From assembly GCA_004764695.1 (NCBI GenBank), contig SMSO01000031.1:8166761-8230760 (forward strand): a stretch of DNA of 64,000 bases. The letters are read 5' to 3'. Shown here in pieces: positions 40,201-47,524 of this stretch (positions are counted from its first letter, which is position 1; every line of letters starts with the position of its first letter). Under the pieces are notes generated by a model that saw nothing but the letters and a program-made list of their open reading frames with translations, was not told the DNA's origin and made no database searches. The stretch comes from Schizochytrium sp. TIO01. Its lineage: Eukaryota > Protista > Bigyra: Labyrinthulomycetes. The position numbers and the translations under genes are program-made.

Positions 40201-43200
40201 TTACTCAAGTGATGTCAGTGACTGGTTCTCTTTCAGCGCCGCAGCCAGTGCCTTGGCGCCCTCATCGCCGATGTTGTTGTGCCAAAGACTGTTGATTTGA
40301 TTGAATAATGGCAAGCAACTCATGCAAGCGAGCAAGCATACATGCATGAACGTCAGTCATCGAGCTTGGCTTTGGGTTGGCTTGGGTTTCAGCATTTCAT
40401 GTGTCGTGCTCTGGCATTTTGCGCATTGTTGGATCTTGATTCAAACACACAATCGCAGTCGAAACTGACGATCCCAACCAGCATTCAAACGCAACATGCA
40501 AACAAACCACCAACCAACACAGACCACCACGCCGCAGCAAAACATAGCACAGGATAGCACGGTAAACCAGTCTATAGCACCAAATATCCAACCAAACAAG
40601 AAAACCACGCAACAAGCCCCATCCATATACAAGCAAGCAAGCAAGAAAGCAAGCCTTTCCACGAGGTGCTAAGACAGACAACCAACTTACTCAAGTGATG
40701 TCAGTGACTGGTTCTCTTTCAGCGCCGCAGCCAGTGCCTTGGCGCCCTCATCGCCGATGTTGATGTTGTAACCAAGACTGTTGATTTGATTGAATAATGG
40801 CAAGCAACTCATGCAAGCGAGCAAGCATACATGCATGAACGTCAGTTATCGAGCTTGGCTTTGGGTTGGCTTGGGTTTCAGCATTTCATGTGTCGTGCTC
40901 TGGCATCTTGCGCATTGTTGGATCTTGATTCAAACACACAATCGCAGTCGAAACTGACGATCCCAACCAGCATTCGCAGGCAACATGCAAACAAACCACC
41001 AACTAACACAGACCACCACGCCGCAGCAAAACATAGCACAGGATAGCACGGTCAACCAGTCTATAGCACCAAATAGCAAGCAAACAAGAAAACCAGGCAA
41101 CAAGCCCCATCCATATACAAGCAAGCAAGCAAGCAAGCAAGCAAGCAAGCAAGCAAGCAAGCAAGCAAGCAAGCAAGCAAGCAAGCAAGCAAGCAAGCAA
41201 GCAAGCAAGCAAGCAAGCAAGCAAGCCTTTCCACGAGGTGCTAAGACAGACAACCAACTTACTCAAGTGATGTCAGTGACTGGTTCTCTTTCAGCGCCGC
41301 AGCCAGTGCCTTGGCGCCCTCATCGCCGATGTTGTTGCTCCAAAGACTGTTGATTTGATTAAATAATGGCAAGCAACTCATGCAAGCGAGCAAGCATACA
41401 TGCATGAACGTCAGTCATCGAACTTGGCTTTGGGTTGGCTTGGGTTTCAGTATTTCATGTGTCGTGCTCTGGCATATTGCGCATTGTTGGATCTTGATTC
41501 AAACACACAATCGCAGTCGAAACTGACGATCTCAACCAGCATTCGCAGGCAACATGCAAACAAACCACCAACCAACACAGACCACCACGCCGCAGCAAAA
41601 CATAGAACAGGATAGCACGGTAAACCAGTCCATAGCACAAAATAGCAAGCAAACAAGAAAACCACGCAACAAGCCCCATCCATATACAAGCAAGCAAGCA
41701 AGCAAGCAAGAAAGCAAGCCTTTCCACGAGGTGCTAAGACAGACAACCAACTTACTCAAGTGATGTCAGTGACTGGTTCTCTTTCAGCGCCGCAGCCAGT
41801 GCCTTGGCGCCCTCATCGCCGATGTTGTTCAGAGGAAGACTGTTGATTTGATTGAATAATGGCAAGCAACTCATGCAAGCGAGCAAGCATACATGCATGA
41901 ACGTCAGTCATCGAGCTTGGCTTTGGGTTGGCTTGGGTTTCAGCATTTCATGTGTCGTGCTCTGGCATTTTGCGCATTATTGGATCTTGATTCAAACACA
42001 CAATCGCAGTCGAAACTGACGATCCCAACCAGCATTCAAACGCAACATGCAAACAAACCACCAACCAACACAGACCACCACGCCGCAGCAAAACATAGCA
42101 CAGGAAAGCACGGTAAACCAGTCAATAGCACGAAATAGCAAGCAAACAAGAAAACCAGGCAACAAGCCCCATCCATATACAAGCAAGCAAGCAAGCAAGC
42201 AAGCAAGCAAGCAAGCAAGCAAGCAAGCAAGCAAGCAAGCAAGCAAGCAAGCAAGCAAGCAAGCAAGCAAGCAAGCAAGCAAGCAAGCAAGAAAGCAAGT
42301 AAGCCATTCCACGAGGTGCTAAGACAGACAACCAACTTACTCAAGTGATGTCAGTGACTGGTTCTCTTTCAGCGCCGCAGCCAGTGCCTTGGCGCCCTCT
42401 GAGCCGATGTTGTTGCTCCAAAGACTGTTGATTTGATTGAATAATGGCAAGCAACTCATGCAAGCGAGCAAGCATACATGCATGAATGAACGTCAGTCAT
42501 CGAGCTTGGCTTTGGGTTGGCTTGGGTTTCAGCATTTCATGTGTCGTGCTCTGGCATTTTGCGCATTGTTGGATCTTGATTCAAGCACACAATCGCAGTC
42601 GAAACTGACGATCCCAACCAGCATTCGCAGGCAACATGCAAACAAACCACCAACCAACACAGACCACCACGCCGCAGCAAAACATAGCACAGGATAGCAC
42701 GGTAAACCAGTCCATAGCACAAAATAGCAAGCAAACAAGAAAACCAGGCAACAAGCCCCATCCATATACAAGCAAGCAAGCAAGCAAGCCTTTCCACGAG
42801 GTGCTAAGACAGACAACCAACTTACTCAAGTGATGTTAGTGACTGGTTCTCTTTCAGCGCCGCAGCCAGTGCCTTGGCGCCCTCTGAGCCGATCTTGTTG
42901 TATCCAAGACTGTTCATTTGATTGAATGATGGCAAGCAACTCATGCAAGCGAGCAAGCATACATGCATGAACGTCAGTCATCGAGCTTGGCTTTGGGTTG
43001 GCTTGGGTTTCAGCATTTCATGTGTCGTGCTCTGGCATTTTGCGCATTATTGGATCTTGATTCAAACACACAATCGCAGTCGAAACTGACGATCTCAACC
43101 AGCATTCGCAGGCAACATGCAAACAAACCACCAACCAACACAGACCACCACGCCGCAGCAAAACATAGCACAGGATAGCACGGTAAACCAGTCCATAGCA

Positions 43201-46200: not shown

Positions 46201-47524
46201 TGACTGGTTCTCTTTCAGCGCCGCAGCCAGTGCCTTGGCGCCCTCATCGCCGATGTTGTTCTCTCTAAGACTGTTGATTGGATTGAATAATGGCAAGCAA
46301 CTCATGCAAGCGAGCAAGCATACATGCATGAACGTCAGTCATCGAGCTTGGCTTTGGGTTGGCTTGGGTTTCAGCATTTCATGTGTCGTGCTCTGGCATT
46401 TTGCGCATTGTTGGATCTTGATTCAAACACACAATCGCAGTCGAAACTGACGATCCCAACCAGCATTCGCAGGCAACATGCAAACAAACCACCAACCAAC
46501 ACAGACCACCACGCCGCAGCAAAACATAGCACAGGATAGCACGGTAAACCAGTCCATAGCACAAAATAGCAAGCAAACAAGAAAACCAGGCAACAAGCCC
46601 CATCCATATACAAGCAAGCAAGCAAGAAAGCAAGCCTTTCCACGAGGTGCTAAGACAGACAACCAACTTACACAAGTGATGTCAGTGACTGGTTCTCTTT
46701 CAGCGCCGCAGCCAGTGCCTTGGCGCCCTCATCGCCGATGTTGTTCTCTCTAAGACTGTTGATTGGATTGAATAATGGCAAGCAACTCATGCAAGCGAGC
46801 AAGCATACATGCATGAACGTCAGTCATCGAGCTTGGCTTTGGGTTGGCTTGGGTTTCAGCATTTCATGTGTCGTGCTCTGGCATTTTGCGCATTGTTGGA
46901 TCTTGATTCAAACACACAATCGCAGTCGAAACTGACGATCCATCCCAACCAGCATTCGCAGGCAACATGCAAACAAACCACCAACCAACACAGACCACCA
47001 CGCCGCAGCAAAACATAGCACAGGATAGCACGGTAAACCAGTCCATAGCACCAAATAGCAAGCAAACAAGAAAACCAGGCAACAAGCCCCATCCATATAC
47101 AAGCAAGCAAGCAAGCAAGCAAGAAAGCAAGCCTTTCCACGAGGTGCTAAGACAGACAACCAACTTACTCAAGTGATGTCAGTGACTGGTTCTCTTTCAG
47201 CGCCGCAGCCAGTGCCTTGGCGCCCTCATCGCCGATGTTGGACCAACGAAGACTTTGCTTTGAAGACTGTCGATTTGATTGAATAATGGCAAGCCACTCA
47301 TGCAAGCGAGCAAGCATACATGCATGAACGTCAGTCATCGAGCTTGGCTTTGGGTTGGCTTGGGTTTCAGCATTTCATGTGTCGTGCTCTCGCATCTTAG
47401 GCATATACGAAGTTTTATCTAAATCGATAAAATGAATAGACTTGATGATGAGAACCTACTTTAAGCTTGTTGCTCCCTGTCGTAGGTCTCGAAGCGCTTT
47501 CACGACACGTGGATTGTCAGACAT
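37291..47524 (-). CDS. LRR-ROC-COR-TIR Roco-family protein, 17 exons, ~1280 aa. Exons in transcript order: 47460-47524, 47169-47252, 46672-46755, 46187-46270, 45698-45781, 45233-45316, 44768-44851, 44292-44375, 43807-43890, 43315-43401, 42826-42909, 42341-42424, 41756-41839, 41263-41346, 40691-40777, 40205-40288, 37291-39802
   Basis: The last exon encodes a capping LRR (IFFNNIGNEV), the ROC GTPase (GQGAAGKTS, WDYGGQE, GTYLD), COR (VPLAWL, LLYFHTLGVVVH, ILEPQWL, LPNGVFQRL) and TIR (VFLSH, GLKVW, SAVCMEF, KPILLV). Each upstream repeat holds cag|T-CTT-nnn-nnn-AAC-AAC-ATC-GGC...CTT-GA|gtaagt = xLxxNNIGDEGAKALAAALKENQSLTSL. Exon 1 MSDNPRVVKALRDLRQGATSL ends AA|gtagg, also phase 2. The total of 3843 nt is in frame if exon 2 uses an AAG acceptor. 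Confidence 0.9.
39803..47390 (-). repeat. Tandem array of 15 complete intron+LRR-exon cassettes (periods 465-585 bp) plus a partial intron copy
   Basis: Exon-to-exon spacings are 486, 572, 493, 585, 485, 489, 492, 485, 476, 465, 465, 489, 485, 497. Introns are near-identical, start GTAAGT, end ATCAACAG and carry a CTGAC branch-like site ~65 nt before the acceptor. Length differences come from an internal (GCAA)n tract and a 20-nt deletion. Confidence 0.97.

Follow-up and report, generated by a model that had tools for sequence, protein, structure and literature searches.

A tandem array of single-LRR exons with a near-invariant scaffold and hypervariable predicted contact positions in a ROCO-TIR gene of Schizochytrium sp. 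TIO01

We analyzed a 64,000-nucleotide stretch of the genome of the thraustochytrid Schizochytrium sp. TIO01 (GenBank assembly GCA_004764695.1, contig SMSO01000031.1, positions 8,166,761 to 8,230,760; hereafter the window, to whose first letter all unprefixed coordinates refer). On its minus strand lies a ROCO-type gene with 15 tandem exons, each encoding a single leucine-rich repeat (LRR) and each followed by a nearly identical intron. The gene model comprises 17 exons: a short first exon, the 15 LRR cassette exons (a cassette being an exon with its intron, about 486 bp), and a long last exon for Roc, COR, and TIR domains (Table 1). The model was predicted from the sequence, with exons analyzed singly and the frame summed by arithmetic: the predicted exons add up to 3,858 nt, or 1,285 codons plus a stop. 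None of them contains an in-frame stop.

The last exon places the gene in the ROCO family, as Pfam finds a Roc domain with a COR domain directly C-terminal of it. The Roc domain has the P-loop GQGAAGKTS and the motif DYGGQ, separated by an insert of about 120 residues. The nearest solved relatives of the TIR domain are the NADase TIR domains of SARM1/TIR-1, a weak match (PDB phmmer E = 0.015). The glutamate in ...VCMEF... sits, by eye, at the place of the SARM1 catalytic glutamate, and the HMMER alignment ends short of it; TIR domains of this kind may be NAD consuming. The best matches to the Roc-COR-TIR exon (49 to 54% identity) are unnamed Logan proteins and many proteins of Hondaea fermentalgiana, in which Roc, COR, and TIR are combined with LRR, WD40, or SAM domains. 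No signal peptide or membrane segment was seen in the translated exons of the window gene. The gene is apparently intact and probably encodes a cytosolic candidate immune receptor resembling the nucleotide-binding, leucine-rich repeat receptors (NLRs). Its order of sensor repeats, GTPase switch with dimerization domain, and TIR parallels that of NLRs and other immune proteins of the STAND (signal transduction ATPases with numerous domains) type. We infer that Roc-COR acts as the switch and TIR as the effector; a ligand on the LRR face would likely free a TIR assembly controlled by Roc-COR.

The cassette exons are built to one plan. Thirteen measure 84 nt and two (cassettes 9 and 14) 87 nt, with one extra codon each, a correction to a preliminary description of this DNA that had counted 15 exons. 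A 43-nt core occurs in exactly 15 minus-strand copies and in no plus-strand copy even with 6 mismatches allowed; in this search of both strands, no relic or inverted LRR exons were found within introns at the locus. The acceptor is CAG|T and the donor |GTAAGTTGG in every one of the 15. Every cassette intron is in phase 2, the leading T of each exon completing the split codon of the exon before it. The repeat reads L-x7-x8-N-x10-I-G-x13-E-G-A-K-A-L-A-A-A-L-K-E-N-Q-S-L-T-S-L-x5, with 28 amino acids in 13 repeats and 29 in 2, and its beta-strand LxxL-x5-L-x7-x8-N is built across the splice junction, one strand from two exons. A lone cassette exon matches LRR chains of the NOD2, ribonuclease inhibitor (RI), and NLRX1 type in the PDB (E of 1e-10 to 1e-4, including 5IRM, 1DFJ, and 3UN9). 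By sequence, the repeats belong to the RI-type LRR class, with the consensus LxxLxLxxNxIGdxGAxxLaxaL and 28 to 29 residues.

Nucleotide diversity in the array is concentrated in very few codons. Among the 15 cassettes, the hexamer encoding x7 and x8 has a nucleotide diversity (pi) of 0.524 and the secondary codons N9, x10, and x13 one of 0.207, compared with 0.013 at the remaining 66 exon sites and 0.0199 in the introns (29 segregating sites among 371 ungapped columns; top 6-nt window, 0.171). Hexamer diversity is thus about 26-fold above that of the intron, and all six hexamer sites segregate, versus 29/371 in the intron (P = 4e-7 by Fisher's test). This per-site comparison of aligned cassettes bears out the preliminary description, which had set hypervariable codons against quiet introns. 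Its readings of the codons after a conserved CTT were also reproduced: the dipeptides in transcript order (RW, RE, RE, RD, GY, GY, RH, GY, GY, GY, WS, PL, WS, GY, and WH), the nine hexamers (CGTTGG, AGAGAG, CGAGAC, GGATAC, CGACAC, GGTTAC, TGGAGC, CCTCTG, and TGGCAC), the secondary N/K and D/S/Y variation (GAT and TCA differ at all three bases), and a 45-nt core (codons 10 to 24) identical in all 15 copies, third positions included.

The two codons named there are not the whole of the variation. The split codon x5, made of the last two exon bases and the constant T of the next exon, is an additional hot spot (D in nine cassettes, F in three, V in two, and S in one) that had been missed. The claim that synonymous sites are almost invariant applies to the core but does not wholly hold elsewhere: the Leu codon adjoining x5 is CTT or CTA (pi = 0.48), CTG/CTA variation is found in two units and GGC/GGG variation in one, and the hot x7 codons use CGT, CGA, and AGA for Arg and GGA and GGT for Gly. 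At the protein level, the amino acid is constant at 22 of the 28 codons, and repeats are >85% identical to one another. The variation is confined to positions x5, x7, x8, and x10 of LxxLxLxxNx, plus a D/S dimorphism at x13. The codons at x7 are NGN (R, G, or W) in 14/15 cassettes and those at x8 mostly NAC (Y, H, or D); most of the hexamers are joined by 1 or 2 nucleotide steps, and 17 of the 30 residues at x7/x8 are Y, W, R, or H. From textbook LRR geometry and a model made for Ectocarpus, we infer that the x positions would bind ligand on the concave face and rim of the solenoid.

Table 1. Predicted features of the ROCO-type gene in the window, and tail exons of other cassette arrays (the latter in locus coordinates)
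Feature	Position	Strand	Description
Exon 1	47459..47524	-	66 nt, ATG + 21 codons; phase-0 donor GTAGGT; phase fits acceptor at 47266
Exon 2 including cassette 1	47169..47266 (cassette 47252-47169)	-	14-nt leader (SSKQS); x7x8 RW; split codon GA|T = D
Cassette 2	46672..46755	-	84 nt; RE (AGAGAG); split codon GT|T = V
Cassette 3	46187..46270	-	84 nt; RE; split codon V; exon identical to cassette 2
Cassette 4	45698..45781	-	84 nt; RD (CGAGAC); split codon D
Cassette 5	45233..45316	-	84 nt; GY (GGATAC); split codon TC|T = S
Cassette 6	44768..44851	-	84 nt; GY; split codon TT|T = F
Cassette 7	44292..44375	-	84 nt; RH (CGACAC); x10 K; x13 S (TCA); split codon F
Cassette 8	43807..43890	-	84 nt; GY; split codon D; as single exon matches RI-type/NOD2-type PDB LRR chains
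Cassette 9	43315..43401	-	87 nt, 29 aa; GY (GGTTAC) then Y-I-S; x13 Y; split codon F
Cassette 10	42826..42909	-	84 nt; GY; x10 K; x13 S; split codon D
Cassette 11	42341..42424	-	84 nt; WS (TGGAGC); x13 S; split codon D; (CAAG)31 in next intron
Cassette 12	41756..41839	-	84 nt; PL (CCTCTG); split codon D
Cassette 13	41263..41346	-	84 nt; WS; split codon D; (CAAG)27 in next intron
Cassette 14	40691..40777	-	87 nt; GY (GGTTAC) + extra Ile codon; split codon D; hexamer common to paralogous C4 array
Cassette 15	40205..40288	-	84 nt; WH (TGGCAC); split codon D; 1/371 intron sites different from cassette 14
15 cassette introns	39803..47168, between exons	-	381-501 nt, phase 2, GTAAGTTGG...CAACAG
Last exon	37291..39802	-	2512 nt, 836 codons + TAA; degenerate capping LRR, then Roc, COR, TIR
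Roc GTPase domain	38977..39663	-	Pfam PF08477, E = 4.2e-18
COR-A domain	38311..38778	-	Pfam PF16095, E = 1.3e-13; residues 342-497 of last exon
C-terminal TIR domain	37294..37719	-	Pfam PF13676 (TIR_2), E = 1.2e-8
Tail exons	L012:2109-2450, L016:4033-4410, L019:4564-4908, L021:6104-6448, L025:5014-5355, L027:5602-5952, L029:4943-5293	-	

The statement that the introns differ at few sites is right for substitutions (the 29 of 371 given above), but indels and a (CAAG)n microsatellite of 3 to 31 copies add further differences between them. This microsatellite stands at one fixed position in every cassette intron (e.g., 41118-41226 and 42180-42304), causes most of the difference in intron length, and may mark a site of slippage or exchange. 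The last 170 nt or so of the intron and its first 35 nt or so are conserved at 77 to 83% in arrays on many contigs, the middle being array specific. A conserved intronic RNA was not supported, as an Rfam scan of two cassettes, with matches accepted up to E = 1, found none. Homology to the cassette intron is also seen in the 3' part of intron 1 (47276-47395).

Within the window array, introns differ from one another by 2.0% on average (range, 0.2 to 4.0%). Their mean distance to the array of the closest paralogue, a pseudogene on contig C4, is 5.6%, and the distance within the C4 pseudogene array itself is 7.5%; the unique exons of the window gene and this 95%-identical paralogue differ at 3.6 to 5.4% of bases. 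In the intron tree, units of the window array fall into three tight clusters and do not pair one to one with the C4 units. The introns of cassettes 2 and 3 have no substitution in 371 ungapped columns, only small indels. In the 15-unit alignment, the four-gamete test is failed by 115/253 pairs of informative sites, with a minimum number of recombination events (Rmin) of at least 9. These statistics, like the Nei-Gojobori (NG86) values given below, are descriptive rather than model based, and two of the informative columns are alignment artifacts of the 87-nt exons; intron sites alone give the same pattern. Mosaics are also visible in the exons, where GGATAC occurs with four different 3' ends and cassettes 7 and 10 share an AAG-TCA-CTA block behind different hexamers. 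The window array is a recombination mosaic. The homogenizing background that had been proposed is confirmed by these data (intron distances of 2.0% within the array versus 3.6 to 5.6% to the nearest paralogue, and the four-gamete failures) and by near-identical introns on different chromosomes (see below). An assembly artifact was rejected, as the differences are codon structured, in frame, and splice site preserving.

The array is one member of a large family. A tblastn search of the 64-Mb, 37-contig genome with the ROCO exon gave about 30 matches, the closest being two C4 pseudogenes (95% and 88% identity, with stops), an intact copy on contig C6 (76%), and a copy on C32 (54%). All four have one-LRR-per-exon arrays upstream or nearby, so the family has long had this architecture; how uniform the repeats are, by contrast, varies between arrays. 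The first C4 pseudogene (C4:247000-259294) consists of an 18-cassette array followed by a Roc-COR-TIR region with two stops, and the second (C4:263383-268389) of a 5-cassette array followed by a copy with three stops. The cassettes of the C4 pseudogenes have scaffold amino acid changes (in the array of the 95% copy, proportion of nonsynonymous differences [pN] = 0.041) that are absent from the intact window gene. A search with one cassette as the DNA query returned at least 357 matches, which are spread over many contigs and often close to contig ends; by sequence, several hundred related cassettes are present in the genome. Most other arrays lie within tens of kilobases of contig ends (e.g., C4:1-10000, C23:18000-28000, C32:36000-46000, C34:58000-68000, and C36:45000-55000), and several are segmentally duplicated between contigs. 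Many arrays with a period of about 385 bp and one LRR per exon end not in Roc-COR-TIR but in a conserved tail exon of about 95 to 115 amino acids without a Pfam match. The tail exons are 55 to 100% identical to the first tail in pairwise comparison (mean column identity, 75%) and seem to mark a second class of genes assembled from these cassettes.

We collected 238 exons of 84 nt from 20 loci. Across this family set, the scaffold IG[DS]EGAKAVAAALKENRSLTSL is nearly invariant, and amino acid entropy is highest at x8 (3.52 bits), x7 (3.35), x10 (3.08), x5 (2.53), and x13 (1.79), with all other positions below 1.3. There were no in-frame stops in the 238 exons, a number to be read with the design of the motif scan, which excluded stop-containing exons, nor in 13 further cassettes that the scan had missed and that were recovered by the core; only these 13 are an unbiased check. 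The lack of stops fits real, selected coding exons. Seven of the eight window hexamers that we tabulated are absent from the sampled arrays (about 240 cassettes), CGACAC being found once elsewhere, and we rejected importation from other arrays as the origin of the hexamers on this ground. GGTTAC, which was outside the tabulated set, recurs in the C4 paralogue array. Because this hexamer and the R/G/W alphabet of x7 are both found there, part of the variation predates the homogenization of the window introns.

An all-against-all comparison of 198 units (exon plus intron) from 21 loci showed homogenization and hexamer divergence to be decoupled. Across unit pairs, hexamer divergence was essentially bimodal. 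When intron distance was below 0.005, hexamers were identical in 21/22 between-locus pairs, mostly positional homologues in segmental duplicates, but in only 2/10 same-array pairs (P = 4e-5). At intron distances of 0.5 to 2%, hexamers already differed at 0.41 to 0.61 of sites, compared with about 0.62 to 0.65 for unrelated units, and this was also the case between contigs; on C24 and C32, for example, introns are 98 to 99% identical and hexamers unrelated. Because hexamers are saturated at these distances both within and between arrays, intron identity is no clock. The sequence outside the hot codons is homogenized, and the hexamers are not carried along.

Two pairs of sister arrays caught the exchange itself. 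In L012/L028 (contigs C4 and C13) and L023/L024 (C34 and C8), introns are 100% identical over about 294 nt, and the sole exon difference is GAC versus TCA at x13, a change of three adjacent bases. The two pairs are independent. In both, the alternative x13 codon is present with identical flanks in neighboring cassettes, and the closest sites that distinguish the units confine the tract to about 35 nt. These swaps are direct evidence that cassettes exchange short, templated tracts by gene conversion in the germ line, and to this extent the templated change suggested in the preliminary description was found. Otherwise unrelated units share identical hexamers in 1.2% of cases, versus 0.6% expected under codon independence, a modest sign of block sharing or residue preference.

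We consider it likely that the cassettes evolve in concert, through unequal exchange and gene conversion of short tracts, and that selection keeps ligand-face diversity at x5, x7, x8, and x10. Under this model, unequal crossing-over and gene conversion with tracts down to a few tens of bases would hold introns and scaffold codons nearly identical, with exchange both within the array and with the genome-wide pool of several hundred related cassettes. New variants at the hot positions would arise by ordinary point mutation and patch-wise conversion, and selection for differing binding surfaces would keep exchange from erasing the differences there and at the D/S position x13. The case for selection is that unequal exchange by itself makes whole units uniform and that a 6-nt patch within long perfect identity should usually fall inside a conversion tract; persistent diversity at the very positions of strand and loop therefore needs selection for nonidentical repeats. 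The stop-free exons and the bias toward Y, W, R, and H point the same way. That the preserving force is ligand driven is our reading of the positions involved.

The ratios within codons show what kind of variation this is. The scaffold has a pN of 0 and a proportion of synonymous differences (pS) of 0.046, and the pN of the hot codons is about 11 times this pS and 25 times the intron pi; a site model with one shared synonymous rate would return a large omega from these values. Inside the hot codons, pS is also high. NG86 pathway counts are crude at saturation, and the use of Arg and Gly synonyms is the direct evidence of synonymous change. Because of the high pS, the variable entity is the patch and not the amino acid. 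Such patch-like variation fits old patches shielded from homogenization or patch-wise replacement. The NGN/NAC pattern, the links of 1 or 2 steps, and the almost entirely private hexamers suggest stepwise point mutation within this subfamily.

Several observations weigh against concerted evolution with selected contact positions, or against parts of it. Inside the hot codons, pN is 0.51 and pS 0.60 (pN/pS of about 0.85), so that the classical excess of nonsynonymous change implied by the earlier reading of strong diversifying selection was not shown there; the excess belongs to the whole patch relative to its flanks. Amino acid-specific positive selection is not demonstrated, only the roughly 26-fold excess of the patch. 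The near-private NGN-NAC hexamers (among about 240 cassettes) fit recent in situ point mutation as well as they fit old, protected variation. In very young duplicates (mean intron distance, 0.001), 0/126 hexamer sites have changed, which bounds the hexamer rate below about 24 times that of the intron, with low power. The splicing is predicted from sequence, and a search of the protein collection gave no transcript or protein with >54% identity to the window gene. The placement on the concave face is likewise a prediction, made from LRR geometry and the Ectocarpus model.

A simpler history, which we regard as unlikely, is a recent burst only: very recent amplification of the array, starting with one to three founder cassettes, would have been followed by divergence of the hexamers in place, by point mutation under very strong positive selection and with no continuing homogenization. 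The three tight intron clusters speak for it, as do the private hexamers, mostly 1 or 2 steps apart, with G as the second base of x7 in 14/15 cassettes and x8 mostly NAC. The burst would, however, require 6 nt to change at least 26-fold faster than the adjoining intron, and about 160-fold faster in the closest pairs. The four-gamete mosaic indicates continuing exchange, the decoupling also holds for cassettes on different chromosomes, and GGTTAC is common to an array that split off earlier than the window introns coalesce.

Less likely again, in our judgment, are neutral islands: exposed positions free of constraint, at which clusters of mismatches block or end conversion tracts without any selection for diversity. 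The near equality of pN and pS in the hot codons speaks for them, as does the variability of the synonymous site next to x5 (pi = 0.48). Yet no hot-codon stop was found in any recovered cassette, including the 13 independent ones, although this shows that the exons are held open rather than what process varies them, and x7/x8 have a strong Y/W/R/H bias. A 6-nt patch within at least 45 nt of perfect identity should usually be co-converted, and the repeated hexamers (GY four times, RE twice, and WS twice) show that co-conversion or duplication happens. A patch must also first outrun conversion in order to diverge at all.

Concerted evolution with selection at the contact positions can also be set against a dedicated mechanism. 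It is very doubtful that the cassette pool serves as a donor library from which, in clonal growth or in the course of the life cycle, short-tract conversion or regulated exon choice rewrites ligand-face codons in receptors that are expressed, such as the window gene; if it did, a unicellular stramenopile would have an anticipatory repertoire like that of the lamprey variable lymphocyte receptors (VLRs). Programmed diversification as the cause of the observed pattern, whether by targeted germ line or somatic rewriting (cassette-templated microconversion like that of lamprey VLRs or the trypanosome variant surface glycoproteins [VSGs]) or by regulated exon skipping, is the least probable account: the short-tract block swaps in sister arrays, the several hundred potential donors with near-identical flanks, the all-phase-2 introns that keep any subset of exons in frame, and the somatic recombination hypothesized for Ectocarpus ROCOs speak for it, but the germ line gene is complete and open, unlike the incomplete VLR locus, 21/22 near-identical between-locus pairs keep their hexamers, and the roughly 240 sampled cassettes contain no donors for the window hexamers except CGACAC once and GGTTAC in C4. 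The targeted process offered as an option in the preliminary description is accordingly unsupported. Mutagenesis like that of diversity-generating retroelements (DGRs) was rejected because the hot sites vary among all four bases; a template repeat was not seen either, although no further search for one was made.

Two neighbors of the ROCO gene were noted in the window. A divergently transcribed histone H2A/H2B pair (about 49190-49571 on the minus strand and 50810-51170 on the plus strand) lies about 1.7 kb upstream of the gene start. An intronless open reading frame of 617 amino acids (32878-34731, plus strand) has no Pfam domain and is 99% identical to an MMETSP transcript; its only other match is partial (70%) in Hondaea, and it appears to be a lineage-restricted expressed gene.

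In a literature search, we found no description of LRR cassettes or ROCO-TIR families in thraustochytrids. The closest relatives in architecture are the brown algal LRR-ROCO genes, which have one LRR per exon, phase-2 introns, and exon shuffling (Zambounis et al. 2012, PMC3341825; Teng et al. 2024, PMC11378527). In Ectocarpus, positions x3, x5, x7, and x8 of these exons are positively selected and were modeled on the concave face (Zambounis et al. 2012, PMC3341825). Like them, the window gene is a stramenopile ROCO with N-terminal, recombination-prone, single-repeat exons and phase-2 introns, is proposed to be an immune receptor, and has its variable sites at those x positions of LxxLxLxx that are predicted to lie on the concave face. 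Placing the variation at such positions had been part of the preliminary description, and x5, x7, and x8 are indeed three of the four sites selected in Ectocarpus; x10 has no counterpart there. The differences are several. The window exons have 84 or 87 nt and encode RI-type repeats of 28 or 29 amino acids, whereas those of brown algae have 72 nt and encode 24-amino-acid, plant-type repeats (GxxPxxLxxxxxLxxLxLxxNxLx). In the window, the exon border cuts the strand between L4-x5 and L6, while each brown algal repeat holds a whole strand. The window gene has a C-terminal TIR, and the brown algal proteins are described as simple LRR-ROC-COR; brown algal loci have relic exons on the opposite strand, and the window locus has neither inverted nor intronic relic exons. 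Scaffold and introns are also far more uniform in the window. The roughly 30 ROCO matches in this genome contrast with the statement that other species of the stramenopile-alveolate-Rhizaria (SAR) group, including Schizochytrium, have at most four copies (Teng et al. 2024, PMC11378527).

The system most alike in mechanism is that of fungal NLR-like proteins with highly internally conserved repeats, such as the Podospora HET-D/E NWD family (Paoletti et al. 2007, PMC1805685; Dyrka et al. 2014, PMC4986451). Their repeats are exchanged within and between loci, with three to five surface positions under positive selection; the repeats are of the WD40, ANK, and TPR types, and no LRR was found (Dyrka et al. 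2014, PMC4986451). Both systems have near-identical tandem repeats, concerted evolution, a few hypervariable surface positions, and a sensor-switch-effector order with a death- or TIR-related effector. The fungal repeats, however, lie within one exon, whereas the homogenized unit of the window takes in an intron of about 400 nt, and the fungal switch is NACHT or NB-ARC instead of Roc-COR. Repeat-induced point mutation of the fungal kind is not relevant to the window array.

The window repeats are of the same LRR class and the same lengths of 28 and 29 residues as those of ribonuclease inhibitor, NOD2, and NLRP proteins. RI and the vertebrate NLRs have modular, in-phase LRR exons with borders within the beta-strand. 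Vertebrate LRR exons usually encode two repeats (171 nt) that have diverged from one another, and we know of no concerted evolution of introns for the LRR exons of vertebrate NLRs or RI. The hot-spot contacts of RI are at x5, x7, x8, and x10; a literature check gave no mapping of contacts to repeat positions.

Homogenized arrays have been described from another thraustochytrid. The LORE-TEARS of Aurantiochytrium limacinum are tandem subtelomeric units of 366 to 529 bp homogenized between chromosome ends, described as spacers without similarity to GenBank sequences, with no coding role or LRR mentioned (preprint 10.1101/2023.06.15.545109). The likeness is that in this genome, too, arrays with the cassette intron lie near many contig ends; any equivalence of the two kinds of repeat would be tentative. 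In contrast to LORE-TEARS, the window array is chromosome internal and joined to a ROCO-TIR gene. VLR, VSG, and DGR systems differ from the window gene in that the assembled sequence of the latter is a complete, open gene.

Lampreys, fungi, and protein engineers all build binders from repeats in which the scaffold is frozen and a few contact positions are free to vary. The window array is an unusually clean natural example, with no scaffold amino acid change in 15 repeats and introns that are 98% identical. Somatic recombination was hypothesized for the Ectocarpus ROCOs in 2012. Thraustochytrids are clonal, fast growing, and transformable, and persistent mirusviruses are known from them; somatic diversification of stramenopile LRR-cassette receptors, an issue raised in 2012, becomes directly testable in thraustochytrid clones. 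Homogenized repeats with protected variable spots are known from fungal and brown algal receptors and are, in the literature searched, undescribed for this lineage and repeat type. The thraustochytrids would add a third repeat type to this list, an RI-type LRR with a frozen scaffold and free contact positions coupled to a putative Roc-COR switch and TIR effector.

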